Below are positions 4,278-42,612 of a DNA stretch of 64,000 nt, in pieces. A program made the position numbers and the translations under genes. Source of the DNA: Macrostomum lignano. Its lineage: Eukaryota. The number at the start of each line of letters is the position of its first letter. Positions within the stretch are counted from its first letter, which is position 1. Below the pieces are notes generated by a model. That model saw nothing but the letters and a program-made list of their open reading frames with translations. It was not told the origin of the DNA and made no database searches. The stretch is from the NCBI GenBank assembly GCA_002269645.1, contig NIVC01002768.1, positions 62,001 through 126,000 of the forward strand, given 5' to 3'.

Positions 4278-4375
4278 ATTGTCGCTGTCTTAAAAAACTT
4301 TTCAACAGACTTCCATTGGTTATAATTTATTTAAAACAAAACACGAGAGAAATCTCCCTTTTTATTTTTCAGTCT

Positions 4376-4554
4376 TGTTGTACTTTTCGTAGTAACGAAG
4401 ACGAATGCAAGATGCCGAATTAGGAAGATAGATGCATGCAATTAGTAGATGCATGCAGCGCGTATATTTTAGCCGCGAAGTAGCTGGCTGCTATACTTAA
4501 AATATGAATAAGGCTTCACCCATAAACCATAGAACTTAAAGTTCATACACAACA
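4376..4554 (-). repeat. 3' LTR (179 bp)
   Basis: Near-identical to 8481-8647 apart from a 12-bp length difference around a duplicated GATGCATGCA. Confidence 0.95.
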
Positions 4555-4626
4555 CCCCCACATTTTAGCAATTAACCTGGAGAGAAATAAATGACTGTTT
4601 TCTATTTTGTCTAACGATCAAATAAA

Positions 4627-8418: not shown

Positions 8419-8480
8419 CGGGATGAAGATTTGGTGACTGCAGTATCGTCCCGCGGCGAATTAAATTTTCCTCGTCGCCA

Positions 8481-8647
8481 TGTTGTACTTTTCGTAGTAA
8501 CGAAGACGAATGCAAGATGCCGAATTAGGAAGAGATCGTAGATGCATGCAGCGCGTATATTTTAGCCGCGAAGTAGCTGGCTGCTATACTTAAAATATGA
8601 ATAAGGCTTCACCCATAAACCATAGAACTTAAAGTTCATACACAACA
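8481..8647 (-). repeat. 5' LTR (167 bp)
   Basis: TG...CA termini; PBS immediately internal. Confidence 0.95.
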
Positions 8648-9013
8648 AGTCTGCACCACAAACATACAACAGCGAGGCTTATAATACATGTGTAGGTGCA
8701 GCTTTGCAGGGCGCCAAGGCCTTTGACGCGCGCCCCATTGATAGAGTGCTACTACAGCTAATACAGGCTCCCCTCTCACGTGCCTCGGGTGCGCCATGGC
8801 TTGGCATTAGAGAGCACTTTACAGAATTTCGACACCTCGCAGAAATCGACAGTTTCTGCTGCTTTTAAAAGAAAGTGCGACTCGCGCTCAAAGAAATGGA
8901 GCGTTTTTTAGGGCGTGCCATCACCGAGCCTCGAGACATTCGAGACACTAATGGAGCCTCAGATTCTGACGCAACACCGAGACCTGAGCTGGTTAATTTC
9001 CACAGCCAAGATC

Positions 9014-9720
9014 TCCAGAGCTCAGTCCGCTACAAGCAGATTTCCCTGCCTCTCAAGAGCTCAGTCCGCTACAAGCAGATTTCCCTGCCTCTCCACAGCT
9101 CAGTCCGCTACAAGCAGATTTCCCTGCCTCTCCACAGCTCAGTCCGCTACAAGCAGATTTCCCTGCCTCTCCACAGCTCAGTCCGCTACAAGCAGATTTC
9201 CCTGCCTCTCAAGAGCTCAGTCCGCTACAAGCAGATTTCCCTGCCTCTCAAGAGCTCAGTCCGCTACAAGCAGATTTCCCTGCCTCTCCACAGCTCAGTC
9301 CGCTACAAGCAGATTTCCCTGCCTCTCCACAGCTCAGTCCGCTACAAGCAGATTTCCCTGCCTCTCCAGAGCTCAGTCCGCTACAAGCAGATTTCCCTGC
9401 CTCTCCACAGCTCAGTCCGCTACAAGCAGATTTCCCTGCCTCTCCACAGCTCAGTCCGCTACAAGCAGATTTCCCTGCCTCTCCAGAGCTCAGTCCGCTA
9501 CAAGCAGATTTCCCTGCCTCTCCACAGCTCAGTCCGCTACAAGCAGATTTCCCTGCCTCTCCAGAGCTCAGTCCGCTACAAGCAGATTTCCCTGCCTCTC
9601 CACAGCTCAGTCCGCTACAAGCAGATTTCCCTGCCTCTCCAGAGCTCAGTCCGCTACAAGCAGATTTCCCTGCCTCTCCAGAGCTCAGTCCGCTACAAGC
9701 AGATTTCCCTGCCTCTCCAG
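9014..9720. repeat. 39-bp minisatellite, about 18 copies
   Basis: Unit CTCCAGAGCTCAGTCCGCTACAAGCAGATTTCCCTGCCT. Confidence 0.96.
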
Positions 9721-10468
9721 CACACACACCGGCACAAATTCTAATCGATAAAAGTTATTGAGCTTAGGAAAAAATAGCTGACAGCTAGCAAGGTGTATGG
9801 CGGAAATCAATCCCTTTTATACTTTGCGCCTCTTGGCAACCGCAGAGGGGCAGAGACTGCTGTAGTGAGTAGGAAAGGCTCACAACCTTCCTTTCTCTAC
9901 TAGCTATTTCCAGTCCAACGGTTTCTGCAACAACCGCCACCTCCCCCTCCTCAAGAGTTGAGTGACTCAAGACCGCTCGCTTCCTCCTGCAGTGCTAAAA
10001 CCGCCTCCCAGCCGCTACCCAAATGGAGTTCCGCTTTTTTTTCTCTGGGTTTTAAATGTAGTGCGATTTGACAACACAAGAACCGCCGGCCCGAGCAGAG
10101 CCAATTTGATTTATTAATCGCATTAAATAACGCGAGTGAAACGCATTGACAAGACAAGCGATGGGTGCAGTAGAGCCTCAAGAGTACACTATATGTACAG
10201 TCATTATCGCCAAAGAGGATTGAAAATCTGTCCCTTAACAGTTCGAGAGGCCTCGGAGCAGATGGGACAGATCGGGGCAACAAAATATGAAATCGCTCAA
10301 GAAATTTTTGTCAATAAAAACAGGCTAACACCGCGAGTTGCTTTTTTACAAAATCAAATAGGAATCAGGGATGGGGGCAGAGCAGTCTTAAATACATCAG
10401 TGTGGAACTGAAGGGGTGCGCATTTATAACTTTATGACTTGGAGATTGCTGCTGAACTATGCGGAGGG

Positions 10469-11439
10469 CAGTCAGTCAGTCAGTCAGTCAGTCAGTCAGT
10501 CAGTCAGTCAGTCAGTCAGTCAGTCAGTCAGTCAGTCAGTCAGTCAGTCAGTCAGTCAGTCAGTCAGTCAGTCAGTCAGTCAGTCAGTCAGTCAGTCAGT
10601 CACTCAGTCAGTCACTCAGTCAGTCAGTCAGTCAGTCAGTCAGTCAGTCAGTCAGTCAGTCAGTCAGTCAGTCAGTCAGTCACTCAGTCAGTCAGTCACT
10701 CAGTCAGTCACTCAGTCAGTCAGTCAGTCAGTCAGTCAGTCAGTCAGTCAGTCAGTCAGTCAGTCAGTCAGTCAGTCAGTCAGTCAGTCAGTCAGTCAGT
10801 CAGTCAGTCAGTCAGTCAGTCAGTCAGTCAGTCAGTCAGTCAGTCAGTCAGTCAGTCAGTCAGTCAGTCAGTCAGTCAGTCAGTCAGTCAGTCAGTCAGT
10901 CAGTCAGTCAGTCAGTCAGTCAGTCAGTCAGTCAGTCAGTCAGTCAGTCAGTCAGTCAGTCAGTCAGTCAGTCAGTCAGTCAGTCAGTCAGTCAGTCAGT
11001 CAGTCAGTCAGTCAGTCAGTCAGTCAGTCAGTCAGTCAGTCAGTCAGTCAGTCAGTCAGTCAGTCAGTCAGTCAGTCAGTCACTCAGTCAGTCAGTCACT
11101 CAGTCAGTCACTCAGTCAGTCAGTCAGTCAGTCAGTCAGTCAGTCAGTCAGTCAGTCAGTCAGTCAGTCAGTCAGTCAGTCAGTCAGTCAGTCAGTCAGT
11201 CAGTCAGTCAGTCAGTCAGTCAGTCAGTCAGTCAGTCAGTCAGTCAGTCAGTCAGTCAGTCAGTCAGTCAGTCAGTCAGTCAGTCAGTCAGTCAGTCAGT
11301 CAGTCAGTCAGTCAGTCAGTCAGTCAGTCAGTCAGTCAGTCAGTCAGTCAGTCAGTCAGTCAGTCAGTCAGTCAGTCAGTCAGTCACTCAGTCAGTCACT
11401 CAGTCAGTCAGTCAGTCAGTCAGGCAGTCAGTCAGGCAG
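10469..11439. repeat. (CAGT)n microsatellite, about 240 units
   Basis: Direct reading; sporadic CACT variants. Confidence 0.97.
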
Positions 11440-11442
11440 TCC

Positions 11443-12170
11443 TCAAAGGTCGCTCTCAATTTCATCAACGTCAAGTTCGACACCCCTGACATCTTCGCAG
11501 CCGCTGTCGCCGTCGTCCTCCTTCTCGGCACCGTCTGCTGAGGAGTCTGAGTCCTCCTCAGGAATGAGCTCATCCTGATAATAATAGTACTGAGCATCAT
11601 GGCGCGCCTGCGGCTGCGGCGACGGGCTGCAGGCGATGTGCGGCAGGCCGACCAGGAAGCTCCGACCGGCGCTTGGCAACGGCGGCTCTGGCGGGGGCGG
11701 CGTCAGCAGCGGCTGCTGCATCGCTGGCCGGTGTCGCCGCCACCGCCGGCGGCTTGGATGCCGACGCCGTTGCTGCTGCTGCTGCGGCTGGGACTGCCGC
11801 TGAAACTGCAGAAGCTGCATCGGAGGCGACAGTCTGGCCAGCTGAGCGGCAAAATTCCACTGGGGCGGGGAGCTGCCAGGAGACGAGCCAGGGAAACTGC
11901 GGGGAGACAGGCTGTCCTGCGGACTGCCGAGCGGCTGCTGCTGCTGCTGTGGCGCTGGTGGCGGCGGCGTGGCAGCGCAGAGGCGGAGGTCGCGGAGGCC
12001 GAACTCGAGCAGCGGGGGGCCGGGAGGCCGCACTGGCACCGGTCGGTGAAGGCCGCCGCGCAGCAGCGTCAGCGAGCGGCACTGCCGCTTTGGCGCCAGC
12101 GGCGGCGGGCTGGGCGGCACGGCGTCGGCAGCGTCGGGTTGACGCGGCTGCTGAGGCTGCGGAGGCTCAG
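11443..12170 (-). CDS. Probable terminal exon of an unidentified Pro/Gln-rich protein with an acidic C-terminus
   Basis: Acceptor-like CAACAATCCAG at 12171-12172, GC-rich 242-codon open frame, stop at 11443. No domain recognised; upstream exon not found. Confidence 0.55.
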
Positions 12171-12425
12171 CTGGATTGTTGAGAGGTTGGGTGATGTTAG
12201 AATTGGCTGCGGTCGAGATGTGCAACCAAATGCACACAGTGTTACATGCATTCAGTGCCAGTAGCCGTTTAAATTGCAATTAAATTATAACAAAACTTGT
12301 ATAGTTGATTGATTTTAAAGCTTTCAAATTTGTTTATTTTGGCCAATTTCAGGATGAGGCCGAAACAAAAGATTTTTCACAAACCTGCCAGAGTCATAAA
12401 GATTCTGAACAAGAATTTGAAGAAA

Positions 12426-12822
12426 TGTAGCCTAGTGGGTTGTAGCCTAGTGGGTTGTAGCCTAGTGGGTTGTAGCCTAGTGGGTTGTAGCCTAGTGGGT
12501 TGTAGCCTAGTGGGTTGTAGCCTAGTGGGTTGTAGCCTAGTGGGTTGTAGCCTAGTGGGTTGTAGCCTAGTGGGTTGTAGCCTAGTGGGTTGTAGCCTAG
12601 TGGGTTGTAGCCTAGTGGGTTGTAGCCTAGTGGGTTGTAGCCTAGTGGGTTGTAGCCTAGTGGGTTGTAGCCTAGTGGGTTGTAGCCTAGTGGGTTGTAG
12701 CCTAGTGGGTTGTAGCCTAGTGGGTTGTAGCCTAGAGGGTTGTAGCCTAGTGGGTTGTAGCCTGGTGGGTTGTGGCCTAGTGGGTTGTGGCCTAGTGGGT
12801 TGTGGCCTAGTGGGTTGTAGCC
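12426..12822. repeat. 15-bp minisatellite TGTAGCCTAGTGGGT, about 26 copies
   Basis: Direct reading; the unit resembles a Pol III A-box and grades into the SINE head. Confidence 0.95.
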
Positions 12823-13030
12823 TCGTGGCTAGTGCGTCGGACATCGGAGAAAGGTCGGGGGCTCGATTCTCGACCTACTTGGAACAATTTGTGTCCTTGA
12901 GCAAGACACTCAACTTTGCATTGCTTCAGTTCACCCAGCTGTAAAATGGGTGCCAGCATTAGCTGGGGTAATTGAGGGTGTGTGTGGCGACCCCCCAGTC
13001 CTTGGACTGAACAGCCGTACGCTGCTTTCA
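12815..13030 (+). mobile_element. tRNA-derived SINE with CORE-like domain
   Basis: A-box-like TAGCCTCGTGG, B-box-like GGCTCGATTC, then GTGTCCTTGAGCAAGACACTCAAC...CTGTAAAATGGG, which resembles the MIR/CORE consensus (recalled, not searched). Confidence 0.65.
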
Positions 13031-19156: not shown

Positions 19157-20063
19157 TGACAGAGTGTTACAGAGACACCTGAAAGATTTGAGAGTGACTG
19201 CGAAGACACCTGAGGGTGCTGAAAGTGACTGCAGACACCTGGAGGTGCGGAGAGTGACTGCAGAGACACCTGAAGTATAGAAGAGTGACTAAAGAGATAC
19301 TTGAAGGTGCGGAGAGTAACTAGAGACACCTGAAAGTAGGTATAGTTACTTCAGAGACACCTGAAGAAGTGGAGAGTAACTAAGGAGACACCTGAACGTG
19401 CGGAATAGTGACTACAGAGACATCTGAAGGATCAGAGAGTAACTACAGAGACACCTGAAGGATCAGAGAGTGACTACAGAGACACCTGAAGGATCAGAGA
19501 GAGATTACAGAGACACCTGAAGGATCAGAGAGTGACTACAGAGACACCTGAATGATCAGAGAGTGACTACAGAGACACCTGAAGGATCAGAGAGTGAGTG
19601 ACTACAGAGACACCTGAAGGATCAGAGAGTGACTACAGAGACACCTGAAGGATCAGAGAGTGAGTGACTACAGAGACACCTGAAGGATCAGAGAGTGATT
19701 ACAGAGACACCTGAGGTGCAGAGAGTAACTACAGAGACACCTGAAGGATCAGAGAGTGATTACAGAGACACCTGAAGGATCAGAGAGTGACTACAGACAC
19801 CTGAAGGATCAGAGAGTGACTACAGAGACACCTGAAGGATCAGAGAGTGACTACAGAGACACCTGAAGGATCAGAGAGTGACTACAGAGACACCTGAGGT
19901 GCAGAGAGTAACTACAGAGACACCTGAAGGATCAGAGAGTGATTACAGAGACACCTGAAGGATCAGAGAGTGATTACAGAGACACCTGAAGGATCAGAGA
20001 GTGACTACAGAGACACCTGAAGGATCAGAGAGTGACTACAGAGACACCTGAGGTGCAGAGATT
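19157..20063. repeat. 31-bp minisatellite GAGACACCTGAAGGATCAGAGAGTGACTACA
   Basis: Direct reading; left-hand copies more diverged. Confidence 0.94.
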
Positions 20064-23000
20064 GACTGCATGCAAAAAGCGCAAAATGATTTGACAATGC
20101 CCTTACCGGATGAGGATGCAGCTGTGAAGGCAGTTAGCGCTAGTGCACCATTCACTGCCGGGCTATACGGATGAAAGGAAGCCGATTCGCAGCTTGGATG
20201 ATTGAAGCCTCGAATGTCTGACATAATGATCCTTTCCGGACTGTCCCGGTTGTCAGGTTAGTTGGGCAAGTTATGACAATGATTTCAAATCTCGGAGTGC
20301 TTCTGCAGTTCAAACAGCTTATTTCAGAACATCTGGAATGTGCAGCAAAGTATTGTATATAGTAATTAATAATAGTCAACGTCATATGCATGGATAATGT
20401 GCATTCTAAAAGTACTCACTGACTCGATGAATGGAAACTATCGATAACCACCCTTTTTATCAACTATATTAGGCATTCAAATATCGGATAAATCTATTAT
20501 TTATCAGAAGCGCTGACTGCGCACACAAATGCAAGAGAAAACTTGGACCGACTGCTTGGCAACTGGCTGGGTCGCGAAAAGAGAGACAGGAGCCGTCCAG
20601 CGGCGTGGGTCTCCCCTGCCCATTATCAGTCGCTGATTGGAGGAGGCCCATTCAGCCAAACGACTTGCTTGCTTTTTTACTGACACTGTGAGCCCTCCTT
20701 CGACTCGATCTGCTAAGCGTTTTACTTCGAGTGTTGTGAGAATTCCTTGCAAGCTGAAGAATTGCTGAAATTATATTCTACTAACTTGCGAGGAATTAAT
20801 ACTCCGGGAGCATCCGGGAGGATTTGTGAGGATTTTGAGGGATTATTTTGAGCATGAGCACGAGTCCGCATGCCTTGATATGAGTTACCATAAGCGTGAC
20901 TGAGCTAAAATTTGCATACTTGACTGCTTTTTCTTCTGGTCTTCAAAACTGAACTCAAGACGGAAAGTTGAGTAATAAAGTCTTACCTTTCTCCAAGCAG
21001 AGAGGTGTCGTCAGCTCTTCTGACTCAATTATTGTCGTTTGGAAAACTCTTATACTTTTCGAAAGCAGCTGTGTAGCCTGCAATATATATTGTAGCTGTT
21101 TAATCGCAAAGGAACAAAGAAACCCTGCCTTCTTGTCCAGTTCCTAGCAAAATTCGTTACTAGTTAGGAGTGATGCGGAGAGCAAGGAGGGGTGCTATAA
21201 AAGCTTTGCAAAACGAACCCTTGGGGTGGTTGGGGCTGGCCTGGTATTGGATAGAGAGACAGGGCAAGAGACCAGAAGGCCAGAAGCTAACACGCACTAA
21301 ACAAAGACTTGAATTAGTGTGTCAAAGCTTTCCTTTCTTCTTTATATTCGCATCACCATCTTCTTGGCGCACAACAAATTTGGAGAATCGGGTCTGGGGG
21401 TGCATGGAACACTAGCCAATGAGAGCGCATCTGGCAGCGTTTCCGGCCCTGGATGTGGGGACTCGGAGGCAATTGATGGCGCGGTAGGATTTAGCGAGCG
21501 CTGGAGGGGGGCAGTGATATAGCGATGACGAATCCCCTGGGGGTTGGCCATGGGGTGTCACAGGATTTTGTTTTATCGGAAGTAGGAAGTGGAAATGTCT
21601 TGCTTTTTTTAAAGCATCCCACAGAATTTCGAAAATGTGATTTTGAAATCCTGCCACGAAAGAGCGTTGTCGTATTGACGACCTTGTATTGCACCTGAAT
21701 TGACTCATGGATTCGGCAACCAGAGCGATTTAATTTTCCTATTTGGAATTCTATGGATTACAGCACTTGGCAAACAGGAAAAATATGGATGATCTATCTT
21801 TCATCACCGCATGGCATGGATTTTGGACAATAGGAAACCCACTAAGGGCTTGTTTATGGGTCAATGCGCGGGCCCGGAGGTCAGAATTATTTCTTCCTGT
21901 TTTACGAGCAGTGTGAGAAATGGCACAATTGCATGTACTTTTATGCTTTACAAATATCACATCTGATTTTAGTATAAAACTACTGTAACAGATAGTTGTA
22001 GTTGTACGTCTACATGTATTTTGTATCTAGATACCGCGTTTAGGTCTTAGGTGTATTCGTTACATAGAACATGCGTGTAGTACGTATCAACGTTGAACTT
22101 TAGCTTAATGTATTTTCATGATAGCCAAATTAAAATAAGACGTAGGCAACTGATTACAAGCTACCATAAATTTATCTTGAAAGATGTAAAAGTTCAACGA
22201 ACTACCATAGGTTCATTATTTTGCTTTCATCAGACTATACTGGCGCAGAATTTCTTCAAGGAAGTGGGCAACTCATAAGCATACGTGTACAAAAAAACGT
22301 GTATGTAACCCAAAATGTGCCACAAATTCAAGATGCACAGTATAGCTTGGCGCCCACACTTTAATTATTTTTCTTTTCCAGAAGAAAATCGGACTTTGAA
22401 ATCGATACAAAATCGATTTACAGCTGCATGGCAATGGCAACCAGAAATTATCACAAAGGCAGCAGGGGCGCATCCGGGGGGGGGGGCAAGGGGCCTGCAT
22501 GGTCCCTCAGCTTGCCTCGGCCAAAAAAATTGGGCCATACTTTTTTATTGCAAACTTATGCGAGGTCTATTTTCAATATTGGGGTGTAGTGCTTGGTATA
22601 GCTTGCATCCTCTAAAATTTTCTGGATCCGAGCCTGAAAGCCATTCTGATTCATTTAACTAGTGAATTATTGTATTACATGTATATATATTGCACCGATA
22701 CAGTGAATTTGTGAACTAGTTCAACAGTGGACCACGGAAATATTACTTTTTTAAACAAAGAAACAATTCTAAAACATATAATATCTTTGAGAATTATAGT
22801 ATTTTTTTTTCATATAGAGTTTTCTTAGTTTCTTTTTTTTAAAAATTATTTCTCGAGCATATAGTGATTTTTATTTAAATTTCTATTACACTGATTGATT
22901 AAAGTTCTTCTAGACTGTAATTAATTAACGCTTGATGAACACTCGAAAGCCTAGGTTATCGCATTGCAGGTTTCTCTTCGTTTGCTGGTCTGATTGTATT

Positions 23001-24627
23001 AGTCATACTCGTAGGTTAGCTTTTAGCTTGCTATTTTTTTTACTTTGTCAAGAAACATAGCAAGCTGACACCTGAGCAGCCCAATCTAAATAATCTTTGA
23101 TAAATAGGAAGGCAAAAATCAACATTAAATTAATTTAATTGAACGACGCGTTTTGCACGATACTATTGCTATTAAAATAACCTTGTCTATATTTTATTAT
23201 CAAGTAGTTTACTAGTTAGCTTGTATATTTGAAATTGTACATGTGTAACCCTCCCCATAGTCTTCATCATGCTGGGTGGGTGCATGCCCAAACAAAAATT
23301 AAATTGTTGCAAATGCATGCAAAAAAATTTAAGTGCATACCCATACTCTCAAATCTAGGTTAATATTGCAACAATAAAATGACCTTTTTGTGTTGCAATT
23401 GCAACAGTAAATGACCTTTCTTGCATTGTATAAAGGACCCTTTTTGGCTGATAATTTAGTTGATTATTTTTCTTTCCTATTTTTATTATTTTAGAAAAAA
23501 CTATTTTATTAGACCTATTATGCATGCCAACTGTGCATGTCCCACATTCTGGATCATGTAGTATATGCCCAAAAATATGGGCCTGTATTGGCCTTGTATA
23601 CCAAAAGTTAGGTGTTCAAAGTTGGTATACTGTGTATGACTCCTAAGAAAATAGTATGCATATACACCTAGTGTTTATTTTTCAACCTACTTTGGCAAAA
23701 GAATTTTTGGCAAAAGTCAATAATGGCAAAAAATACTCTTGCAATGACCATTTCATCTAAAGCTGACCATTTTGGTGAAAAATTTATTCCAAGCTTTGCT
23801 GAAAAGCTTTTTTATTTTAAAAGAAAGTTAAAAAGTAAAACAACAAACTTTATAAAGATTAATTTTATCATGGCATGTTTTTGTTTTGTCGCAGTTTAAT
23901 TTAGTTGTTTTATTAGATGCCCTTCCATTACAGCAGAATTTCAAAGTACAATTTTAAAAGCCTGGATAATCTAAAAAACCTCATCATCATCATCACTAGC
24001 TAATCTATTGACTGCATATCAATAGATCCCATGTACATAAAATAGCTACAAGCTAAGTCATGAGTCTTTTAATTTTCTAACTGTAAATAATTTGCAGCAA
24101 TGGACCATTTATTAAAAGCTTCAATCACCAAAGTGGTATATTTGCAATATATATGTAGCCCATGTTTTTGCCAAACTGGTCACTTTCTTTCGCTGAAATG
24201 TACATCTATTGAAACTTAAAATTCAATTTCGCCAAAGCGTCTTTCGCCGAAAGTTCCTTTGCCAAAATGGGCTGCACCCATTTATTTCATAGAAAAATCA
24301 TAAGTAGAAAAGTTAATTATTAAGTAGAAAAATTAAAAAGTTATTTTTAAGCATAAATTTCAAGTATTCTATTTAAGCTTATTTAATGATGCATTGAAAC
24401 CATGTTTATATGTATCAATTCTTTTACTATAAATAGTATAGACAGAAAAGATAAATAACTAACCAAATTATCAACCAAAAAGGTTCTTTACACAATGCAA
24501 AAAGTAATTTATTATTGCAATCTGGCCTATATTTGAAAGTGTAAATATGCACTTATTTTTTAGTATGTATTTGTATCTGTATTTGTAAAGTATATATAAG
24601 AAATATTGTATATAGATAGGGAGCACC

Positions 24628-24905
24628 CCAACTGCCAGCCAGAAAATTGCCAGCCAACAATTGCCAGCCGACAACTGCCAGCCAACAATTGCCAGCCGAC
24701 AACTGCCAGTCGACAACTGCCAGCCGACAATTGCCAGCCGACAATTGCCAGCCAAGAAAACTTCCAGCCGGAAAACTGCTAGCCAACAACTGCCAGTTGA
24801 CAATTGCCAGTCAACAATTGCCAGCCGAGAAAACTGCCAGCTGGAAAACTGCCAGCTGACAACTGCCAGCCAAGAAATCTGCCAGCTGACAACTGCCAGC
24901 CGACA
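24628..24905. repeat. Degenerate 14-15 bp minisatellite CAACTGCCAGCCGA
   Basis: Direct reading within the AT-rich block. Confidence 0.85.
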
Positions 24906-26653
24906 AGTTCTAGCTAATTGAATCTACTGTAGCCTACTTATTAGCTAAGTAAAAAGCACGAAACTGTTTGGCTAGCAAAAGGCTTGTGGGGTAGCCTTAA
25001 ATGTTGCCCTTCCCTTCCCTAATTTTTTCAGATTTCCATTAGAAAAATTAAAAAATTAGAAAAATTGAATAATTACAAATGTACATCAAAAAATGTAGTG
25101 CACTCCCATTTTTAAAAATATGCTAGTGTTGCGACAATAAAAGACCTTTTTACGTTGTGACAAATAAAATACCTTTTTTAAAATTATGTAATAGACCCTT
25201 ATTACCAGATAATTTGGTTGCTTTTTATGCTTTTTTGGTGATACTATTTATAGCAAAAAATTTATACATGCAAAGATTTGTTTAAATGCTCTTTCACAAG
25301 CTTAAAAAAACTGGAAAGCTTGAAATTTGCACTTAAAATGAACTTTTTTTCATCTTTTTTCAACTTTAAAATATTTCTTATGCATGATTTTATAAAGTGC
25401 ATACCAGGTGTGCACGCATACTATTTTCTCAGGAGTGATGCACGCCAACTGTGTATGCCTAATTTTGGTGTGCGAGGCCAATGCATGCCAGAATTTTTGG
25501 GCATATATTACATGATCCGGAGTGTGATATTATTAGCCTAATACAAAATGCCTTCTGACTTAATTAGTACCAAGTTGCATATTTTAAATAAGCATTTTTG
25601 CAATTTACTTAGCTTGGCTAGGTTTTTTTCCTATGTTTAAAAAACTAATTTCAAGTTTATATTTACTTTTAGTACTAAGGTAATAGTACTAATAAGGTAT
25701 ATCTTGGAAAAAGGAAAATTTTAGCATAAACTAGCTTTATAGCTAGTATTAGTATATATTTTATCACAATCACTTTGTTATACATATAATGTTACTATAT
25801 TAGTATATACTAGTACATTAGGCCTCCCATAGGGGGCATTTAAATAAAAAATTTAAATATTGAAAGCATTAAAAACAATGTTTTTTTCAAATATTGTATA
25901 TATCAATCTGCCAAATAAATCTGAACTAGTTGGGCCCATTAGCTACTAAACCCATTTGCAACTAAACTACCCTTTATATGTTGTAAAATAATAAACAAGA
26001 TCAAATCCATACATGCGCAACCCCCCTGATTTACACTGGCCGTGCTACTTATTTTTTGACCAAAAATGTGACTTACCTGTGAAAAAAACTAAAAAAATTA
26101 ACACAGTTTTTGGTAAACGGCAGGAGTAACCTTGACTGTCTTATTAGGTCGAAATGCCTCAGCATCTAATTAGTATTACGTCCGTATTCTTTGTGGTGGC
26201 ATTTTTGCGACTTACCCTGCTCCACCACAATTTATGGTGACCAGATCGGCCAGGTCGGCCAGCAGTTGCGCATGTATGACAAATCAGTTTAAGGGGTTGA
26301 CACATCAGGCCAGTTTTATAATCTCCTACTCTCTTTTATCAATCATCTATCAGACTGGTTGTAAACAATTAAATTCAGTCAATGCCACAATTAAATTTGA
26401 ATTGAATTTTCTGCTGTAATGTACACCTTCCTGAGTGCAGGAAGTCCTTAGGCAAACTAAAAGCCTTGTTGGGTAAAAAACGATCTTTTTTGGCAAAGGC
26501 TATATTATTTAACTCTTGAAGCTATGGTGTATACCATGTGCCCCACGCTGTTGTTTAGTATTTTTATCACTAATTAAAATTTGATTGAATTCAATTGAAG
26601 ATAAAATGGTAAGTTGGTAACCATTATTCCATAACTTCAGATCTAGAACTTTC

Positions 26654-28876
26654 ATGGAATGTCAGTCTGGCGACCAATTCTCAATGGTTCAGAGACTTTT
26701 GCTGGATAAGCCAGCCATGATTCAGAGTCTGCTGCTGCGTTATCAACAAGTGATGGGAAATTTTTTTACTAGAGATTTGCGGAGCATCTTAAATGAGTGT
26801 ATAGTTTCTGAGCGATTAGATTTGCTATACCAGGTGGATGTTGACGACGAAAGTAATCGACTTCTACTGCTGCAGCCAAGGATTGGCTTGAACGCGTTTG
26901 TTAAAGACTTTCATAACCGCGTTCTTAAATACTTTGACCAGGCAATGCCTTTGTGCTGTTCTAGCATTGGGGATATTGGAGATCGCCTTAATCTAGCAAT
27001 GGAGGATAGAAAGTTGTGCTTTGAGCTTGAGTTCAAGCGATTTCTTTCCGACCAAGGCTATTCCTTTCTACTTGCCGTCAGAGAACTTCTAGACTACGAG
27101 GCTTCGCTTCTAAAATATGCTGCCTCTTCAGGCACAACTTCCACTTCAAGACAAATCACACTGTTAAAGAGGAAATTATCGTGTGACTCTGTATCCGAGA
27201 AGAGCATTGTTCTGACTAAATTCGCTAAGCAAGTTGGGCACGCTCCGAATCGAATGAAAGATATTGAAGCTGCCTTGAAAACTTTTAAAGACAGCGAATT
27301 CTTGCGTCCTGAATCGATTAGTCCTGCACTGGAGGCAATGACGGAATTAGCTTCCTGCTTCTCTAGTTCGTTTAAGAGAGATCTCATCAATGATGAAATA
27401 AAGAATTCTGAATTAAATTCCTTAGCAGTGACAATCAATGGGTTCGAAAAGCTCCAAAGAGCCAGTCATGTTCTACAAAACGAAAATGCTTTTAAAGAAA
27501 AGGCAAGACAGCTTTTTTATAGATCCTTTTTCGTGTCGACCCAATCGTGCCAAGTAATTCGCGAAAAGAAGCACGTTAAGTTCGAAGTGCAGCTCCTTCT
27601 TGGTGATTTCTTTAGTCAATACTTTCAATTCGAGAACCTAGGCATCGACGCGGTGCTTTTAAATGAAGAAGCAGTAAAAAACTTGGAGAATAGGCCTGTT
27701 AGTGACAACTGGGATCAGCTAAGCGACGCCAATAAAATAATCTTCCATGAGAAGAATAGTCTGCAGTTGACACGCGGCAACAAATTCTCGATCAAACTAT
27801 CATTGCAAGTTGCTAAGCTACCTACGCGAAAAAATCCCGTTTGGGCTCAAAAATTTGTTTTCTGCTTTCGAGCTCAAAGCAGCGATTCGTTTTCCACGTT
27901 TTGCCAGTCTCGCCCTGTGACATTCATCACGAACGACAACCAGAGAATGGAATCTTCGGCGTGCATTGCTTACGAGAACATGTTTCCTCTGCCCGTTCGT
28001 CTCGGCTTTGATGTGTATGACTCAATAACTGCCGAGCAATGCGTTGAATTGATTGACTGTTACTTTTTCGACGAGATAAAGTCGAATGGATTTGAGGGGC
28101 ACAATCGGTCATACTTTCTAAAGAAGTGTAGCGAGCTGATGCAGAAGACAGGCAAGGCTAATAGAATTACGTTCGAAGATCTTATCAAGGTGCAATTCAT
28201 TGGAGAGGTCAAGCCCAAGTCGCTATGGGATTTTGTGTACACGTGCGTCAAGTTCATTAAGGATCATGGCCATAGCATGTGGATGAAAGGTCTAATTTTT
28301 GGATTTATCACCAAGTCGGAAGCTATCAATACTATCAAGCGTTACATTAAAAGCGAGTCAAATAAAACAGATTTCGCTCTGTTAAGGTTCTCTGAGACAA
28401 CAGCAACCGTAACAGTTTGCTATTCAGCTTCAACTACAGACGGGTGCACCCCAGGCAATTCTACTTGCAGAATCGAGAATCGGTGCCCCAAGAATGAAAG
28501 CTATTTTAGCTCAACGGCGCTCGCCAAATTCTGTGACGATCCGCTGTCTACACAGACTTTAATTGTTACTCGCTCAGGCTCCCTTGAGAACTCTAGTATG
28601 TTGCGCGACATGATTCCGATCGAAGACAATGTTCCAGGTTATGTACCTCTGCGTAGACGGGGCACTTCCGGATCGCCTGAAAATCTGAGCGAACTGGCTA
28701 GCTCTATTGCTAGTGTGTCCGTCTGCAGTCCAATTGGCTCTGATCTCTCACTCATGTCTCCGTCTGTGACGAGCGAGTGCTCGCAGCAGCAGCAGCAGCA
28801 TTCTAACCCAATTACCGACTCTAACAATCCGATTCCGCATGATGTAATGGAGTTAGTTTTTGATTATCAAAAGTAG
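26654..28876 (+). CDS. STAT: Divergent STAT-family transcription factor, intronless CDS, 740 aa
   Basis: Motifs colinear with STATs: DBD start LFYRSFFVSTQSCQVIREK, WAQKF, SRPVTFITNDNQ (cf. STAT1 SLPVVVISNVSQ), linker/SH2 entry WMKGLIFGFITK, SH2 FALLRFSET, tail tyrosine NVPGYVP, LMSP. Recognised by eye, not by HMM. Confidence 0.88.
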   Translation: MECQSGDQFSMVQRLLLDKPAMIQSLLLRYQQVMGNFFTRDLRSILNECIVSERLDLLYQVDVDDESNRLLLLQPRIGLNAFVKDFHNRVLKYFDQAMPLCCSSIGDIGDRLNLAMEDRKLCFELEFKRFLSDQGYSFLLAVRELLDYEASLLKYAASSGTTSTSRQITLLKRKLSCDSVSEKSIVLTKFAKQVGHAPNRMKDIEAALKTFKDSEFLRPESISPALEAMTELASCFSSSFKRDLINDEIKNSELNSLAVTINGFEKLQRASHVLQNENAFKEKARQLFYRSFFVSTQSCQVIREKKHVKFEVQLLLGDFFSQYFQFENLGIDAVLLNEEAVKNLENRPVSDNWDQLSDANKIIFHEKNSLQLTRGNKFSIKLSLQVAKLPTRKNPVWAQKFVFCFRAQSSDSFSTFCQSRPVTFITNDNQRMESSACIAYENMFPLPVRLGFDVYDSITAEQCVELIDCYFFDEIKSNGFEGHNRSYFLKKCSELMQKTGKANRITFEDLIKVQFIGEVKPKSLWDFVYTCVKFIKDHGHSMWMKGLIFGFITKSEAINTIKRYIKSESNKTDFALLRFSETTATVTVCYSASTTDGCTPGNSTCRIENRCPKNESYFSSTALAKFCDDPLSTQTLIVTRSGSLENSSMLRDMIPIEDNVPGYVPLRRRGTSGSPENLSELASSIASVSVCSPIGSDLSLMSPSVTSECSQQQQQHSNPITDSNNPIPHDVMELVFDYQK

Positions 28877-30026
28877 AAGTAGTTTCTTCGAGGTTTAGCC
28901 CGTTATTTTTTCCGTTGCCTTTTTTGCCGAAGCTGGACCGTGCTTTTGAAGATTTGAAGGCTTGATTGCCGAAATCGCTTCCGGGGCCCTTATTTGTGTT
29001 GCTATGTTGCTACACTGAAATAATACGACTAGTAACAAACTTAATGCGCCAGTTTGTGTTAATAGCACAGATAATACACAACTAGAATGGTCATTCTTCA
29101 CTATTCACTGTGTCCATGCGTGTGACTACTTCTACTTTTAGAACGGTAGTAGAATCTGCATCTGAAAAGATAAATTTGGCAGTAAAAATCGTGTCCGCAA
29201 ATGCATTGAATTGGAGTTTATGCATGTCGGTCTGCTAAAATAGATTGCCCTAGCCGAAAGTTTCAATAAACGCAGGCCACTTCTTTTAAGGTAATTGTTA
29301 TTTAGGATTTAAATCATAGCTTAGCCGTTTTAAAATTTATTAACGTTAAGTAGTGTGATAGCTTTTAATGCCTCTGCACTAATATTGATTTCTTTATGTT
29401 ACTTTATAACGGTTGACAAAAGCAAAATGCTTGGTTAGCTACTTGAAGTAAAAGTAGTGCACGAGTCAATTAGTCAAATGACCAATCTAGTTATATATTA
29501 TCTGTGTTTTTTAGTCGTGTTATAATGCATTGGTTATTGTTTAATATGTTATTTGCTTGTACGTTTCCCGACTAAAATCAGTTTGTCTTTTGTGATCATT
29601 CATTATTGTAAATCTTGCTATTATGATTCTTAGTCTAAAACAATTTTGTGCCTGTGAAAATTTGCTCAAAGCGATTTGTTTGCTACGTTTAATGCCAAAT
29701 ACGATGCTTGTATAACTCAGTTACTAAGCAATAAAACCATTACAATATCTTAAATGTGTATTTGTTTTCTTTGATTATTTTGTGTTGCGTTCTCATCTAA
29801 CTAGTACTTACAGTAGTAATAGTACAGTATTGTTGAAGACTTCCGTTTTCTTACAGTTTTTGTATTGTGTAGAGCTTCCATTTGGTGCAGGCTATCTGGA
29901 TAACTTCCGAATTCGAAGCAGTGTTTAGACATTTTTCTTAGAAACAAGATCTTTAGGTAAAAACGCTGGAAATATGGTGTTTAAACGCACCGTTAATTCA
30001 TTAATTGCAGCTGACAAACCGGCGCA

Positions 30027-30368
30027 ATGTCTGCCGAGAACCTGAGCGAAATGGCCTGCACCTATGCGGCCCTCATTCTGGCTGACGACGATGTTGAAGT
30101 GACCGGCGACAAGATCTCCGCCATTCTGAAGGCCGCCGGCGTCACTGTCGAGCCGTTTTGGCCCAACATGTTCGCCCGGGCGCTCAGCGGCGTGAAGGTC
30201 AAGGACCTGCTGTCCAACGTTGGCTCCTCTGTTGGCTCCGCCCCCGCCGCTGGAGCCGCCGCTCCGGCCGCCGCTGCAGCCGCCGTAGAGCCGGCAGCGA
30301 GCAAAGCCAAGGAGCCGGAGCCGGAGTCCGAGTCCGACGATGACATGGGCTTCGATCTGTTCGGCTAA
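30027..30368 (+). CDS. RPLP1: 60S acidic ribosomal protein P1, 113 aa
   Basis: N-terminal [14 protein letters not shown]...VEPFWP, Ala-rich hinge, acidic tail [10 protein letters not shown]. Probable 5' UTR intron 29957-30010; AATAAA near 30465. Confidence 0.97.
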
Positions 30369-31447
30369 TAACTGTTAACTGATTCAAGTTTCTATCGATT
30401 CCCGTCTAACTGTCAAAAAATATGATAGCAAAAACGTGTCTTGAAATGTTGATCTGACGGTTTAATAAACCAAGTTTAGCCGCGCGCAAGGTTTGGTCTT
30501 TGTGGCGAACAAATTGTTGGCTGGAATGAAAATGCTACCATTGTTTTCTTTTGAGTATTTGTCAAATTTATTTATTTTCTGTGATCGATACTGAAGTATC
30601 GGTTGATGACGTCATAGATGATGCACTGACCATTGTCTAGTTCTCTGTCATGGGTATCAACAATGATCTTGGATATTTTCGTCTCTTTTGCAAGCTCACT
30701 TTCACCATTAGCCGTACGTTCTCAATCAGCTGTTTTACCATTTTCAAGCCCTCAATAAATAGCGTAGTGTAGCCTCAGGGTACATGTATGAAAGTTAATA
30801 GGGAGCTGCAAAGAAATGGCTTGAGAAAAAACTTTTAGAGTACGGCAATTTCTTCATATAAACCAAAGTCTGATGGTTAAACGATAACCCAAACCTACCT
30901 ACGCTAGCCATAAACTTTATGCTTTTTATTATTGTATTTCGATCTTTCATTTCTCAGTGCACACTGCCGGGTGAGTATGTTGTTTCCTGCAACGTGGCAA
31001 ATAAAATCAATTTTACACGCAGTGATCGAACATTTCACCTCCGTCCGTCAGTCAATTCTATTAAACTACATTGTATACAAAGCAAAAAAAAGCAGCATTC
31101 TCGCAGTTTTTACAAACTTCCTATTCGAAATCCCCCGATTGACAACCGGAAAATTTTCAATCGTGCCAAGTAAGACAGAAGACATTCTTCATTTCTATTC
31201 TGTATCGTTTATACTGTTTTTATTACTAGAAGTAGTATATCGAGGATATTTGGGCTCCGTTCTTTATATGAAACAAATTGAATTAATGTAGACAGGGTCG
31301 GATTTTCCGAGTAAAACCGCTGCTGCTATGAATGTACAATTGTACATTGCTCAAGGACTTCTAGAAAAGTCTTATGGACTAGTGGCTACAAACTAAAGAA
31401 ACGCACCCCATTGCAGTTTCCTGATCGCAGTCACTGAACACAAGATA

Positions 31448-31640
31448 TTAGCGCCGAATTAGCGCCACAGTCCACGTTTGAGTGCCACAGCCTAGGTTTT
31501 AGCGCCACAGCCTAGATTTTAGCCCCACAGTTTTGCTTTTAGCGTCACCGTTTAAATTTGTGTCACAGCCTGGATTTTTGCGCCACAGTCTAGATTTTAG
31601 CGCCACAGTCTAGATTTTAGCGCCACAGTCTAGATTTTAG
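31448..31640. repeat. 20-bp VNTR TTAGCGCCACAGTCTAGATT, short allele upstream of TRAF-like copy 1
   Basis: Same unit is expanded at 37808-38465. Confidence 0.9.
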
Positions 31641-32212: not shown

Positions 32213-33014
32213 ATGCCAAACCCCATTCCAAATCGACTGCGGCCTCCGCCAAGAACAGTTGGCCTCAACGAGGCTGACCGCTCGCGCCTTCCCAGCTGTT
32301 CGGACTGCCATCTGCCAGCCTTTGGGGCCTTTAAGACGCCGCATGGCTGTCGCTTGTGCGGATTCTGCTGGGGTCGATTGGCCTGTTTGGAGAGGCTGCC
32401 CTGTCCAGGTAAATCTTAATTGGATAAATTATTTATAATCATATTTTAAGTAAACGAGTTGATTTTGGAGATATAAAAAGACGTCAATTTACAAAGAAAG
32501 TTACAATCACATAAATAGCTGGATAGATAGAGACAAAATATTTTAGTATAGTGGACTGGCCATCTAGTGCCCCCTTCGGGATAATTCAATTGTGTCAAGT
32601 GTAATGCTCTCGTTAGAGAAATGCCGGGCCAGATGTACATGTAAATAAAAATACAGACAATAAACGTTTATGGTCATTTTTCAACTTCCAGGGGCCAGGA
32701 AGCATCACGCCTGTCGAGGCGCTGTCAAATTCCACCAGGACGAGTGCAGCCCCGACCAGGAAGCGAGGCTGCAGCTGAGCGGCGTGTTTATTGAGTGCTG
32801 GAACTCATCGTCCGGCTGCCTCTACATCATGCCCTACATGAAACTGAGCACTCACGAGGCTCAAGAGTGCCAATTCAAGCTGGTGTCCTGCACCGGCTGT
32901 CATCGCAACCTGCTGCGCCGAGATCTTGGCGATCATCAGCGCAGTGACGAGTGCCGGCAAATTTTGATAGCCAATTTAGGCAACTATGGCGTGCCTAATG
33001 ATGGCGACAAGTGA
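32213..33014 (+). CDS. TRAF-like RING + TRAF zinc-finger protein without MATH domain, copy 1 (exons 32213-32408, 32692-33014; 172 aa)
   Basis: RING CSDC-x11-HGC-RLCGFC...CPG. Phase-1 intron CCAG/gtaaat...ttccag/GG keeps frame. SPDQEAR..L..V.IECWN..GC...H..ECQFKLVSC.GC...R.DL.DH...EC is TRAF-type zinc-finger spacing. Confidence 0.85.
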
Positions 33015-35387: not shown

Positions 35388-36224
35388 ATGCGAATACGAC
35401 CTCCACCAAGAACAGTTGGCCTCAACGAGGCTGACCGCTCGCGCCTTCCCAGCTGTTCGGACTGCCATCTGCCAGCCTTTGGAGCCTTTAAGACGCCGCA
35501 TGGCTGTCGCTTGTGCGGATTCTGCTGGGGTCGATTGGCCTGTTTGGAGAGGCTGCCCTGTCCAGGTAAATCTTAATTGGATAAATTATTGATAATCATA
35601 TTTTAAGTAAACGAGTTGCTTTTGGAGATATTAAATTTACAAAGAAAGTTACAATCACATAAATAGCTAGATAGATAGAGACAAAATATTTTAGTATAGT
35701 GGACTGGCCATCTAGTGCCCCCCTTCGGGGCGGCCAATAAGCAAGGAGCAAAATAAATTTATGCAAATCCATTAAAAGATTATTCAAGAGATTATTCAAT
35801 TATGTCAAATGTAATGCTCTCAGTAGAGAAAGGCCATATCAGATATAAATGTAAATAAAAATACAGACAATAAACGTTTATGGTCATTTTTCAACTTCCA
35901 GGTGCCAGGAAGCATCACGCCTGTCAAAACGCTGTCAAATTCCACCAGGACGAGTGCAGCCCCGACCAGGAAGCGAGGCTGCAGCTGAGCTGCGTGTTTG
36001 TCGAGTGCTGGAACTCATCTCGCGGCTGCCTCTACATCATGCCCTACATGAAACTGAGCACTCACGAGGCTCAAGAGTGCCAATTCAAGCTGGTGTCCTG
36101 CACCGGCTGTCATCGCAACCTGCTGCGCCGAGATCTTGGCGATCATCAGCACAGTGACGAGTGCCGGCAATTTTTGATAGCCAATTTAGGCAACTATGGC
36201 GTGCCTAATGATGGCGACAACTGA
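35388..36224 (+). CDS. TRAF-like RING + zinc-finger protein, copy 2 (exons 35388-35565, 35902-36224; about 166 aa)
   Basis: Same splice sites and phase as copy 1; start codon inferred. Confidence 0.82.
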
Positions 36225-39249: not shown

Positions 39250-40403
39250 ATGCCAAATCCAATTCAAAATCGACTGCGGCCTCCGCCAAGAACAGTTGGC
39301 CTCAACGAGGCTGACCGCTCGCGCCTTCCCAGCTGTTCGGACTGCCATCTGCCAGCCTTTGGGGCCTTTAAGACGCCGCATGGCTGTCGCTTGTGCGGAT
39401 TCTGCTGGGGTCGATTGGCCTGTTTGGAGAGGCTGCCCTGTCCAGGTAAATCTTAATTCATAAATTATTCATGATCATACTTTAAGTAAATGAGTTAATT
39501 TGGAGATATTAAATAACCGCAATTTACTATGAAATTTAAAATCGCATAGATAGCTAGATAGACGGGATTATTGGGATATCCCGGCCAATGATAATGTAGT
39601 TATTATATCAATGTAAAGATATAATTGCTAGAGAAAGCAGAGAGGAAGGAATTGGAGTAGGAGAGGAAAGATGAGAGAGGAGAGGAGAGAAGAGAGGAGA
39701 GAAGAGAGGAGAAAGGAGAAGGAGTAGAGAACACAAACACCTGTTTCTTCGCTGCTTTCTTCTGCAGTACCCTCTAACAACTTCGCCTGTTCGTTCCGAT
39801 GACCGTCTCTTTGACGCTTTCATTAGGCATCGTGAAACTAAAGTGAATATAAGGATCGTGCTCTAGTAAGCTACCAGTAGGATTTTTGCAATTGGCTATG
39901 TCTGTTTTAATTTTTACTATTCTCCATTGGGTATCGGATAACACGAAACTGACGCAAGTAATCAATCGGGCTGTGGGTATCGTATGGCGTAAGACTGTCG
40001 AGAAAGTCCGTGCCAGATATACATGTAAATAAATACACAGACAATCCAATCAACGTTTATGATAATTTTTAACCTTCCAGGTGCCAGGAAGCACCACGCC
40101 TGTCAAGGCGCTGTCAAACTCTACCAGGACGAGTGCAGCCCCGACCAGGAAGCGAGGCTGCAGCTGAGCTGCGTGTTTGTCGAGTGCTGGAACTCATCTC
40201 GCGGCTGCCTCTACATCATGCCCTACATGAAACTGAGCACTCACGAGGCTCAAGAGTGCCAATTCAAGCTGGTGTCCTGTACCGGCTGTCATCGCAACCT
40301 GCTGCGCCGAGATCTTGGCGATCATCAGCGCAGTGACGAGTGCCGGCAATTTTTGATAGCCAATTTAGGCAACTATGGCGTGGCTAATGATGGCGACAAC
40401 TGA
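39250..40403 (+). CDS. TRAF-like RING + zinc-finger protein, copy 3 (exons 39250-39445, 40081-40403; 172 aa)
   Basis: Same exon structure; intron enlarged to 635 bp by an insertion. Confidence 0.85.
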
Positions 40404-41529: not shown

Positions 41530-42612
41530 TTTAGATCAGGCAAACTTTTTTACTTCAAAAACCAGATACCAAAAACCAGATACCAGATTACTTCAAAAAC
41601 CTGCAGCCATAACCTTAGCTTATGGCTGCGGGCCAGATTAGAGCAGAAAGGAAAGGAAATAGAGAGGGAGAGAAGTGCAAAGAGATGAGATGAGAGAGAC
41701 GAGGAGAGGAGATGATAAGAGTAGAGTGGAGAGAAGAGAAAGGAGTGGAGATGGGAGAAAAGAGAGAAGAGGGAAGAGAAGAGAAAAGAGAGAAGAGGGA
41801 AGAGAGGAGAGAAGAGAAAAGAGAGAAGGGGGGAGAGAGGAGAGGAGAGAAAAGAGAGAAGAGGGGAGAGAAGAGAAAAGAGAGAAGAGGGGAGAGAGGA
41901 GAGAAGAGAAAAGAGAGAAGAGGGAAGAGAGGAGAGAAGAGAGAAGAGGGGAGAGAGGAGAGGAGAGAAAAAGAGAGAAGAGGGGAGAGAAGAGAAAAGA
42001 GAGAAGAGGGGAGAGAGGAGAGGAGAGAAAAGAGAGAAGAGGGAAGAGAGGAGAGAAGAGAAAAGAGAGAAGAGGTAAGAGAAGAGAGAAGAGAAAAAGA
42101 GAGAAGAGGGGAGAGAAGAGAAAAGAGAGAAGAGGGAAGAGAGGAGAGAAGAGAAAAGAGAGAAGAGGGGAGAGAGGAGAGGAGAGAAAAAGAGAGAAGA
42201 GGGGAGAGAAGAGAAAAGAGAGAAGAGGGGAGAGAGGAGAGGAGAGAAAAAGAGAGAAGAGGGGAGAGAAGAGAAAAGAGAGAAGAGGGGAGAGAGGAGA
42301 GGAGAGAAAAGAGAGAAGAGGGAAGAGAGGAGAGAAGAGAAAAGAGAGACGAGGGAAGAGAGGTGAGAAGAGAAAAGAGAGACGAGGGAAGCTGAGAAGA
42401 GAGAAGAGAAAAAGAGAGAAGAGGGGAGAGAAGAGAAAAGAGCGGAGAGGGGAGAAAGGAGAGAAGAGAAAAGAGAGAAGAGGGGAAAGAGGAGAGAAGA
42501 GGTGAGAGAGGAGAGACGAGAGCTTGAGCGGGCCGGTTGGCTGTTTTGAAGTTTCAAAAAACCCGAGGGGCGTATAGAGACGCTTTGCGGGCCAGATTTT
42601 GCCGACTCTGCC
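41530..42612 (-). mobile_element. hAT-like MITE carrying an expanded GA-rich tract (41655-42520)
   Basis: Right end is reverse-complementary to 33502-33580; degenerate left TIR GATCAGGCAAAC; TSD not found. Confidence 0.55.

Follow-up and report, generated by a model that had tools for sequence, protein, structure and literature searches.

An intact, intronless and highly divergent STAT gene of Macrostomum lignano with a plausible retrogene origin

Intronless STAT genes have been described before. AgSTAT-B of Anopheles gambiae (PMC3206008, citing Gupta et al. 2009) is presented as a functional, fast-evolving, intronless STAT retrogene that regulates AgSTAT-A. For flatworms, a planarian stat5 homolog is induced in the double-stranded RNA (dsRNA) response (PMC8797187), and a survey of 2026 gives STAT as 'not detected in Platyhelminthes' (PMC13203501). 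Our search of the literature with the M. lignano STAT gene identifiers returned no papers, and the only flatworm STAT mentioned was the planarian stat5 (PMC8797187). Here we analysed a stretch of 64,000 nt of the Macrostomum lignano genome (contig NIVC01002768.1, positions 62,001 to 126,000 of the forward strand; hereafter the window), in which a first-pass annotation had proposed a divergent, intronless STAT gene with its signalling residues preserved. We refer to this gene as STAT-A. As judged from its sequence and its modelled fold, STAT-A is a very divergent yet architecturally complete STAT transcription factor. It adds a new and unannotated gene to a well-known family, its type of origin is a known one, and it involves no new mechanism.

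The open reading frame (ORF) of STAT-A extends from 26654 to 28876 on the plus strand of the window and comprises 740 codons and a stop codon (28874..28876) in a single exon with 0 internal stops. The chance of 740 codons staying open, computed from the base composition of the ORF itself, is ~6e-20, and the uninterrupted 2.2-kb coding sequence (CDS) that had been noted is indeed there. Its product is 99% identical to BOX15_Mlig018849g1, a 455-aa 'hypothetical protein, partial' at NCBI. Exact-sequence lookups of the window protein and of a paralog, STAT-D, matched no records.

Next, we searched for relatives of the protein. Using phmmer against the PDB sequences, we observed the best match with STAT5A (E 4.8e-9 over aa 287-589); the STAT5A/B matches ranged from 5e-9 to 2e-8 and were followed by STAT6, STAT2 and STAT3. 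With HMMER we searched 1.84 billion representatives exhaustively and obtained 64 proteins, of which the 30 that were looked up by name were all STAT or STAT-like, the other 34 being without name. The distant relatives of STAT-A came from this search alone. Word-indexed homology searches with the full protein, a profile of the M. lignano groups A-D (see below) and the tail-trimmed protein returned only the near-identical Mlig018849g1-type protein, a likely effect of their low sensitivity and of candidate saturation. When the M. lignano profile was aligned by hhalign to a profile of 16 canonical STATs, the match had a probability of 99.95% and an E-value of 5.2e-38 over 587 columns, covering residues 20-669. 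The AlphaFold2 model, built on a 60-sequence alignment, had a mean predicted local distance difference test score (pLDDT) of 74.4 and a predicted template-modelling score (pTM) of 0.62; the pLDDT exceeded 85 at most of residues 280-650. Searching the PDB with this model in Foldseek, we found that the top 36 matches were all chains of STAT1/2/3/5/6 (E 1.8e-18 to 1.5e-9; target-normalised template-modelling score up to 0.71). These results bear out the proposal that the gene encodes a real STAT.

The domains of STAT-A follow one another as listed in Table 1. In the N-terminal region, aa 124-154 are 45% identical to the end of the N-domain of a mollusc STAT5 (residues 92-122; BLASTP E 1.7e-4). 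The S/Q-rich tail is present in STAT-A only, the aligned paralogs B-D being without it.

We then located the motifs on which the first-pass annotation had relied, namely LLRFSE (aa 576-581), PGYVP (661-665), LMSP (700-703) and the DNA-contacting N..Q, which lies in TNDNQ (426-430). R578 falls on the SH2 arginine column (position of STAT1 R602 / STAT3 R609), which was invariant in two alignments and conserved at >90% in a third, and the SH2 arginine is therefore retained, as proposed. Y663 lies 85 residues after R578, which is the canonical spacing, so that the proposed tail tyrosine also stands. Each of the four M. lignano groups has the motif GYV[PA]; canonical STATs have GYV/GYI, and the Tyr is invariant in their alignment.

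In the solved STAT-DNA complexes, the single base-hydrogen-bonding residue is STAT1 N460, STAT3 N466 or STAT6 H415; STAT1 S459 and Q463 make a thymine-methyl pocket, and the contacts of K336 are mediated by water (PMC5737217). We observed that T426, N427 (27932..27934) and Q430 (27941..27943) of STAT-A occupy the columns that hold the S/N/Q triplet in STAT1/3 and V-H-x-x-Q in STAT5/6, and that R303 is at the STAT1 K336 position. The segment PVTFITNDNQ of STAT-A aligns with PVVVIVHG[SN]Q of STAT5-like proteins. Hence, the DNA-contacting 'N..Q of STAT1/3 type' is correctly described, and T426 and R303 align with STAT1 contacts in addition. The residue of paralogs C and D at the base-contact position is His, as in STAT5/6. 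The likening of LMSP to the PMSP serine of STAT1/3 stands only in part: the motif is present, but S702 (28757..28759) is within the disordered tail and conservation support is absent. As read from the sequence, S702 is a plausible candidate site for a proline-directed kinase.

STAT-A is not alone in this genome. We found at least four divergent STAT groups (A-D) in M. lignano, with copy numbers of two for A, three for B and three for C. Group A, the 740-aa protein of this gene, has 0 coding introns and a GC content at third codon positions (GC3) of 0.47. Group B (Mlig027911g1 / Mlig017145g1; 690-692 aa) also has 0 coding introns (690 aa in 2073 nt) and a GC3 of 0.48. Group C (Mlig018137g3, 014561g2 and 006892g1; 658 aa) has five GT-AG introns, after aa 22, 115, 153, 302 and 477, and a GC3 of 0.81. 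Group D consists of A0A1I8HF71 / A0A1I8GXG3 (624-628 aa). No canonical M. lignano STAT was present among the 30 named of the 64 HMMER matches. A and B are 26-29% identical over their full length, and 44 columns are invariant across A-D, including L576, R578, S580, Q430 and P421. In neighbour-joining (NJ) trees with 200 bootstraps, A+B received 98%, C+D 81% and the M. lignano clade 100%, a value that long-branch attraction could inflate, the NJ method having been applied to very divergent sequences. As at least four groups exist, STAT-A is a lineage-specific paralog, one of the possibilities raised earlier, and not the sole STAT ortholog of the animal. The divergence, on the other hand, does not single out the intronless copy as had been suggested. 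The intron-bearing C is as far from the mollusc STAT5 (22% identity) as A is (23.5%), and therefore the extreme divergence belongs to the whole M. lignano STAT family.

Two observations concern STAT-B itself. Its locus (3775-12958 of its contig, L002) lies between genes for prefoldin, RNase H2 subunit C and GrpE. The C-terminus of STAT-B, EIPDDYIFST (L002:7990-8070), is aligned to DLEDFYLFST in a STAT5-like protein from a mollusc and is perhaps a conserved activation motif; the stretch of STAT-A aligned to it (alignment columns 955-975) is DLSLMSPSVT, which contains LMSP.

We next compared base compositions, because STAT-A had been called compositionally atypical. The CDS has a GC content of 0.434, compared with 0.655 for RPLP1 (30027..30365; GC3 0.79) and 0.70 for the M17 aminopeptidase exon (GC3 0.88), and the flanks of STAT-A have a GC content of 0.35. 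Thus, both the lower GC richness relative to these two genes and the AT-rich flanks were correctly noted. However, the Pfam-verified M. lignano exons beside STAT-B have GC3 values of 0.30 (prefoldin), 0.51-0.53 (GrpE) and 0.53 (RNase H2C), so that coding GC3 spans at least 0.30-0.88 among verified genes, with wide variation between loci. Since the GC3 of STAT-A falls within this range, its composition is not truly atypical, and the description holds only relative to its GC3-rich neighbours. The informative contrast in GC3 is that between A/B (0.47-0.48) and C (0.81).

At its 5' end, STAT-A carries the acceptor-like TTCAG that had been seen, as part of a CTTCAG with its G at -14, which fits the acceptor motif [T/C]TNCAG of the M. 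lignano spliced leader (SL; PMC8629364). STAT-B has TTTCAG with the identical 13-nt spacing to its ATG. The chance of such an acceptor motif 10-20 nt before a given ATG is ~0.03, and that of the identical exact spacing in a second gene is ~0.0025; this shared spacing argues that A and B split by DNA-level duplication of an intronless gene already equipped with the acceptor. We considered an upstream coding exon joined at this acceptor and rejected it. In the alignment, Met1 of STAT-A and the initiator Met of canonical STATs and paralogs B-D are no more than 2 residues apart, and an in-frame stop is found 13 codons upstream of the ATG. The M. lignano SL is 35 nt long and its 3' end is ATG (PMC8629364); whether the SL is joined at 26641 or the possible mini-intron is removed, the result would be ATG ATC TAG, a 2-codon upstream ORF with no N-terminal extension. 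The upstream GTAAGT...TTCAG unit showed no significant similarity to the M. lignano SL.

M. lignano genes have a mean of 4.9 introns (PMC5730564), and a 2.2-kb intronless CDS is therefore a derived state. The mollusc STAT5-like gene has at least 19 introns. In the NJ tree, C/D is the sister lineage of A/B and not a demonstrable parent. We propose that all coding introns may have been lost in a single old event in the ancestor of A and B, with retroposition of a processed mRNA as the most likely route. The retrocopy would then have gained an SL acceptor, and a DNA-level duplication would have split A and B, after which they would have diverged for long (to 26-29% identity) with the signalling residues under constraint. 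The best joint explanation of the data, to which we assign a probability of about 0.7, is that STAT-A is an intact gene of functional type, that it signals via phosphotyrosine (pTyr)-SH2 interaction, and that its introns were lost by old retroposition before the A/B split.

Several findings weigh against this explanation, and they bear on its origin, its function and its mode of signalling. Regarding the origin, the introns of C lie 1-5 residues off the mollusc STAT5 introns, in different phases and with 0 exact matches; because of these mismatches the C introns are not demonstrably ancestral. We found neither a poly(A) tract nor target-site duplications within 25500..30000. The best match to an SL remnant upstream of the ATG was only ATGGTAAG, whose score is equalled by 8.8% of window segments. 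The inflation of the M. lignano clade that long-branch attraction could cause belongs here as well. Stepwise intron loss fits these data equally well. In that case, the same functional STAT would never have been retroposed; its introns would have been lost in place, gradually or by recombination, and A and B would be DNA duplicates of an intron-poor gene. All M. lignano STATs are in fact intron-poor compared with the mollusc gene, C keeping only five introns, and the coding region of the adjacent RPLP1 is intronless too. The hallmarks just mentioned are all missing, and the acceptor 13 nt before the ATG, common to A and B, is a genomic feature not expected on a copy of a processed mRNA. On the other side, the loss of all introns in one lineage with five kept in its sister is easier to obtain by a single cDNA-mediated event, and the shift in GC3 (0.47 versus 0.81) suggests that A/B entered another genomic or expression context. 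The event is also so old, given the A/B identity, that decay of the retroposition hallmarks is expected anyway, and their absence is compatible with an old retroposition. We therefore regard loss in place as somewhat unlikely. The retrogene origin raised in the first-pass annotation is plausible from the sequence: the intronless state of A and B against the five introns of C speaks for it, and the missing hallmarks and the offset of the C introns from the mollusc positions speak against it.

Regarding function, a Pfam scan of the STAT-A protein returned 0 families at E<=1, with STAT_int, STAT_alpha, STAT_bind, STAT_linker and SH2 included in the scan. Paralogs C and D gave sub-threshold Pfam matches only (SH2, STAT_int or STAT_bind), and none of B-D passes the Pfam STAT thresholds. 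Taken literally, the STAT hidden Markov models of Pfam thus fail to hit, a result that the profile-profile and fold evidence overrules; the same evidence argues that detection fails because of divergence and not because the domains are absent. A second copy of the gene is also informative. A homeologous contig, NIVC01002193.1 (L001), aligns to window positions 21510..31640 at 97.7% identity, with RPLP1 downstream in both. Its STAT-A copy (L001:9700-12600, corresponding to ~26400-29100 of the window) has a 1-bp deletion at window position 28015, in codon 454 and outside a homopolymer, which leaves a 455-aa product, the 'partial' NCBI entry mentioned above, and it carries L547Q at a Leu that is invariant in all M. 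lignano STATs. Between the two copies there are 5 nonsynonymous and 2 synonymous changes, a ratio that relaxed constraint could produce. Unless an assembly error accounts for the deletion, the L001 copy is probably, from its sequence, a homeolog in decay; the gene in the window is intact.

These data raise the question of whether STAT-A itself is a non-functional or decaying relic, either a processed pseudogene with its frame still open or a gene being lost after whole-genome duplication. The low GC3 of 0.47, near that of a resident gypsy element (0.48), would suit such a relic, and so would the near-neutral 5:2 ratio between the copies, the codon-454 deletion together with L547Q, and the empty Pfam result. 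However, 740 codons would hardly stay open by chance, and the damage sits in the other copy. Although A and B separated long ago, A has lost none of the catalytic or contact residues that were tested and its core is modelled with confidence, and the CDS differs between the two copies at 0.36% of positions compared with ~2.3% in the surrounding 10 kb. The open frame, the functional residues kept after the deep A/B divergence and this low CDS difference together point to constraint on STAT-A, and we consider the relic quite improbable.

The first-pass annotation had also raised the possibility of a copy captured by an element, and capture of STAT-A by a transposable element or a virus was not supported. 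The AT-rich flanks, the foldback/MITE-like element (MITE, miniature inverted-repeat transposable element) 1.1 kb upstream and a GC3 like that of the gypsy pol ORF of the same window would all be in line with capture. However, no pair of long terminal repeats (LTR) or terminal inverted repeats (TIR) bracketing STAT-A was found around the gene, and no other STAT fragments were found in the window. The copy numbers of A, B and C and the conserved flanks (RPLP1 beside A; prefoldin and RNase H2C beside B) fit the homeologs of a polyploid genome and not mobile copies, and A groups with the host paralogs at 100% bootstrap. Capture is thus a very remote prospect.

If the intact, pTyr-signalling STAT that we favour is correct, a tyrosine kinase would phosphorylate Y663, and two STAT-A molecules would dimerise by reciprocal binding of SH2 and pTyr. 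The dimer may then clamp a palindrome of the gamma-activated site (GAS) type, TTC-N(3)-GAA, with recognition through N427, and transcription would be activated by the S/Q-rich, acidic-ended tail unique to STAT-A. By analogy with the action of AgSTAT-B on AgSTAT-A, STAT-A may possibly regulate B-D, or it may form heterodimers with them.

The remaining points against our explanation concern this signalling mode. The N-domain Trp (W37 position) is not conserved in STAT-A in the alignment, and the coiled coil, of ~130 aa compared with ~185 aa in the mollusc STAT5, is ~55 aa shorter and poorly modelled; on account of both, oligomerisation and partner binding may differ from those of canonical STATs. 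Furthermore, that the gene is expressed and trans-spliced to the SL, where its poly(A) site lies and that its untranslated regions (UTRs) lack introns are all predictions from the sequence. A STAT fold could also operate outside canonical JAK-pTyr signalling, that is, unphosphorylated, via a receptor or Src-type kinase, or by regulating the other M. lignano STATs through heterodimers. The literature is unclear on whether flatworms have a JAK; PMC13203501 contradicts itself and lists no STAT for them, and C. elegans STATs exist without JAK (PMC13203501). The shortened coiled coil and the lost Trp would also agree with such a mode, and the GYV tail motif common to four co-existing paralogs makes heterodimers conceivable. 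Against it, the pTyr pocket of the SH2 domain, the tail Tyr at its canonical distance from the Arg and the base-contact Asn are all kept. As this retention would otherwise be hard to explain, we favour pTyr-dependent dimerisation and DNA binding and judge the non-canonical modes unlikely.

We also put forward a wider interpretation, which is tentative and which we hold at clearly less than even odds. In an A/B branch that is intronless through old retroduplication, the base-contact residue may have switched from His (C/D, STAT5/6-type) to Asn (STAT1-4-type), and A alone may have gained a long transactivation-like tail, so that a STAT1/3-like activator would have arisen independently in a regenerating flatworm. 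The M. lignano STATs would then form an ancient, hidden family of at least four groups, all with the pTyr-SH2 and DNA-contact residues preserved, that domain surveys have missed, in this species and perhaps in flatworms generally.

Table 1. Positions in the window of the predicted domains and candidate signals of STAT-A and of other features
Feature	Window position	Strand	Basis and remarks
N-terminal protein-interaction domain-like helical region, aa 1-~158	26654..27127	+	hhalign from residue 20; pLDDT mostly 74-92 over 11-160, two 10-residue blocks at 63-68
Shortened coiled coil, aa ~159-291	27128..27526	+	Alignment gaps and hhalign mapping; pLDDT 38-68
Ig-like DNA-binding domain, aa 292-~445	27527..27988	+	Mainly beta strands; pLDDT mostly 75-97, 57-63 over residues 361-380
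Helical linker domain, aa ~446-545, with conserved W525 and W543	27989..28288	+	Alignment, model and hhalign
SH2 domain, aa ~546-652	28289..28609	+	K554, R578 (28385..28387), S580, T582; R578 and S580 are invariant columns
Tail segment PGYVP, aa 661-665, with candidate phosphotyrosine Y663 (28640..28642)	28634..28648	+	Sequence read
Disordered S/Q-rich C-terminal tail, aa 670-740, putative transactivation region	28661..28873	+	pLDDT <50; LMSP, QQQQQ run, acidic/hydrophobic end DVMELVFDY
CTTCAG splice acceptor	26635..26640	+	13 nt before ATG, G at -14; putative SL trans-splice site or 5'UTR intron acceptor
Upstream ATG directly before 32-nt GTAAGT...TTCAG unit	26606..26640	+	Possible 5'UTR mini-intron, SL-donor-like junction or chance match
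AATAAA candidate polyadenylation signal	29265..29270	+	Sequence read; would give a ~400-nt 3'UTR
Foldback/MITE-like element	23543-25526		50-71-nt inverted arms around a 14-nt tandem array (24629-24906); AT-rich region 1.1 kb upstream, STAT-A outside
Gypsy-type LTR-retrotransposon ORFs	4630-8460	-	Zinc knuckle, aspartic protease, reverse transcriptase, RNase H, integrase zinc-binding domain, adjacent 214-aa integrase-core-like ORF; GC3 0.48
M17 leucyl (cytosol) aminopeptidase exon	61892-62356	-	Pfam E 1.2e-29; comparison gene of the first-pass annotation

Several other features surround the gene. RPLP1 (30005-30368, plus strand; L001:13367-13714) lies ~1.1 kb downstream of STAT-A on the same strand in both copies and has a TTGCAG acceptor 16 nt before its ATG, so that co-transcription of the two genes in an operon resolved by SL trans-splicing would be possible. 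Further downstream, a family of small Cys-rich ORFs (TFMVIFQLPGARKHHAC...) is repeated in tandem on the plus strand at 32664-33011, 35874-36221 and 40029-40400, with members at L001:16768-17115 and 19946-20293. These ORFs show weak matches to TRAFD1/XAF1 and Sina zinc fingers, have GC3 values of 0.64-0.68 and are interspersed with 20-nt TTAGCGCCACAGTCTAGATT arrays. Tandem Repeats Finder gave 40 rows with a score >=200 for the window. The long tandem arrays (54355-57981, and also 366-1997, 10469-11441, 41681-42522, 60465-61875 and 63065-64000), for example 45 nt x 80.6 and CAGT x 243, give rise to spurious ORFs as long as 1300 aa, which occur on both strands and in several frames.

An early-branching and tractable flatworm thus has several complete STATs that standard domain models do not detect, which corrects the phylogenetic picture of the pathway. 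A hidden divergent family, if it exists as we suggest, would explain the platyhelminth STATs missing from the survey, as domain-based surveys miss such proteins. M. lignano offers transgenesis, RNA interference and regeneration assays, and Y663, R578 and N427 are named targets for studying whether signalling of a cytokine-like or antiviral kind operates in the stem cells and the regeneration of flatworms. STAT-A would also be a second and much older example of a STAT retroduplicate that has stayed intact.

Finally, we compared STAT-A with the known systems. Like AgSTAT-B, STAT-A is an intronless, fast-evolving paralog beside an intron-containing STAT and keeps the STAT domains. AgSTAT-B is a recent single retrocopy with a canonical, Pfam-detectable parent, whereas the event behind STAT-A is old and left two descendant genes (A/B 26-29%), the intron-bearing relatives are themselves highly divergent, and the function is only predicted. 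The planarian stat5 homolog (Schmidtea mediterranea; PMC8797187) and STA-1/STA-2 of C. elegans, likened to STAT-A by description only, are further divergent invertebrate STATs, for which an upstream JAK is absent or uncertain.

Among the M. lignano paralogs B-D, with which STAT-A forms one clade (100% bootstrap) and shares the 44 invariant residues, the SH2 Arg and the GYV tail motif, STAT-B is the closest in features, being intronless and low in GC3 and having the identical acceptor spacing. Unlike all of them, STAT-A has the 77-aa S/Q-rich tail with LMSP and the acidic/hydrophobic end. The best sequence and fold matches of STAT-A are the lophotrochozoan STAT5-like proteins (for example, Gigantopelta aegis XP_041351652.1 and Ylistrum balloti XP_060077224.1) and vertebrate STAT5/STAT6. 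STAT-A differs from the STAT5-like proteins in its ~23% identity, its coiled coil shorter by ~55 aa, the Asn of STAT1-4 in place of the His of STAT5/6, and 0 versus at least 19 coding introns; like them, it has its domains in the STAT order and keeps the SH2 Arg, a tail tyrosine of GYV type and the conserved Q of the DNA-contact loop.

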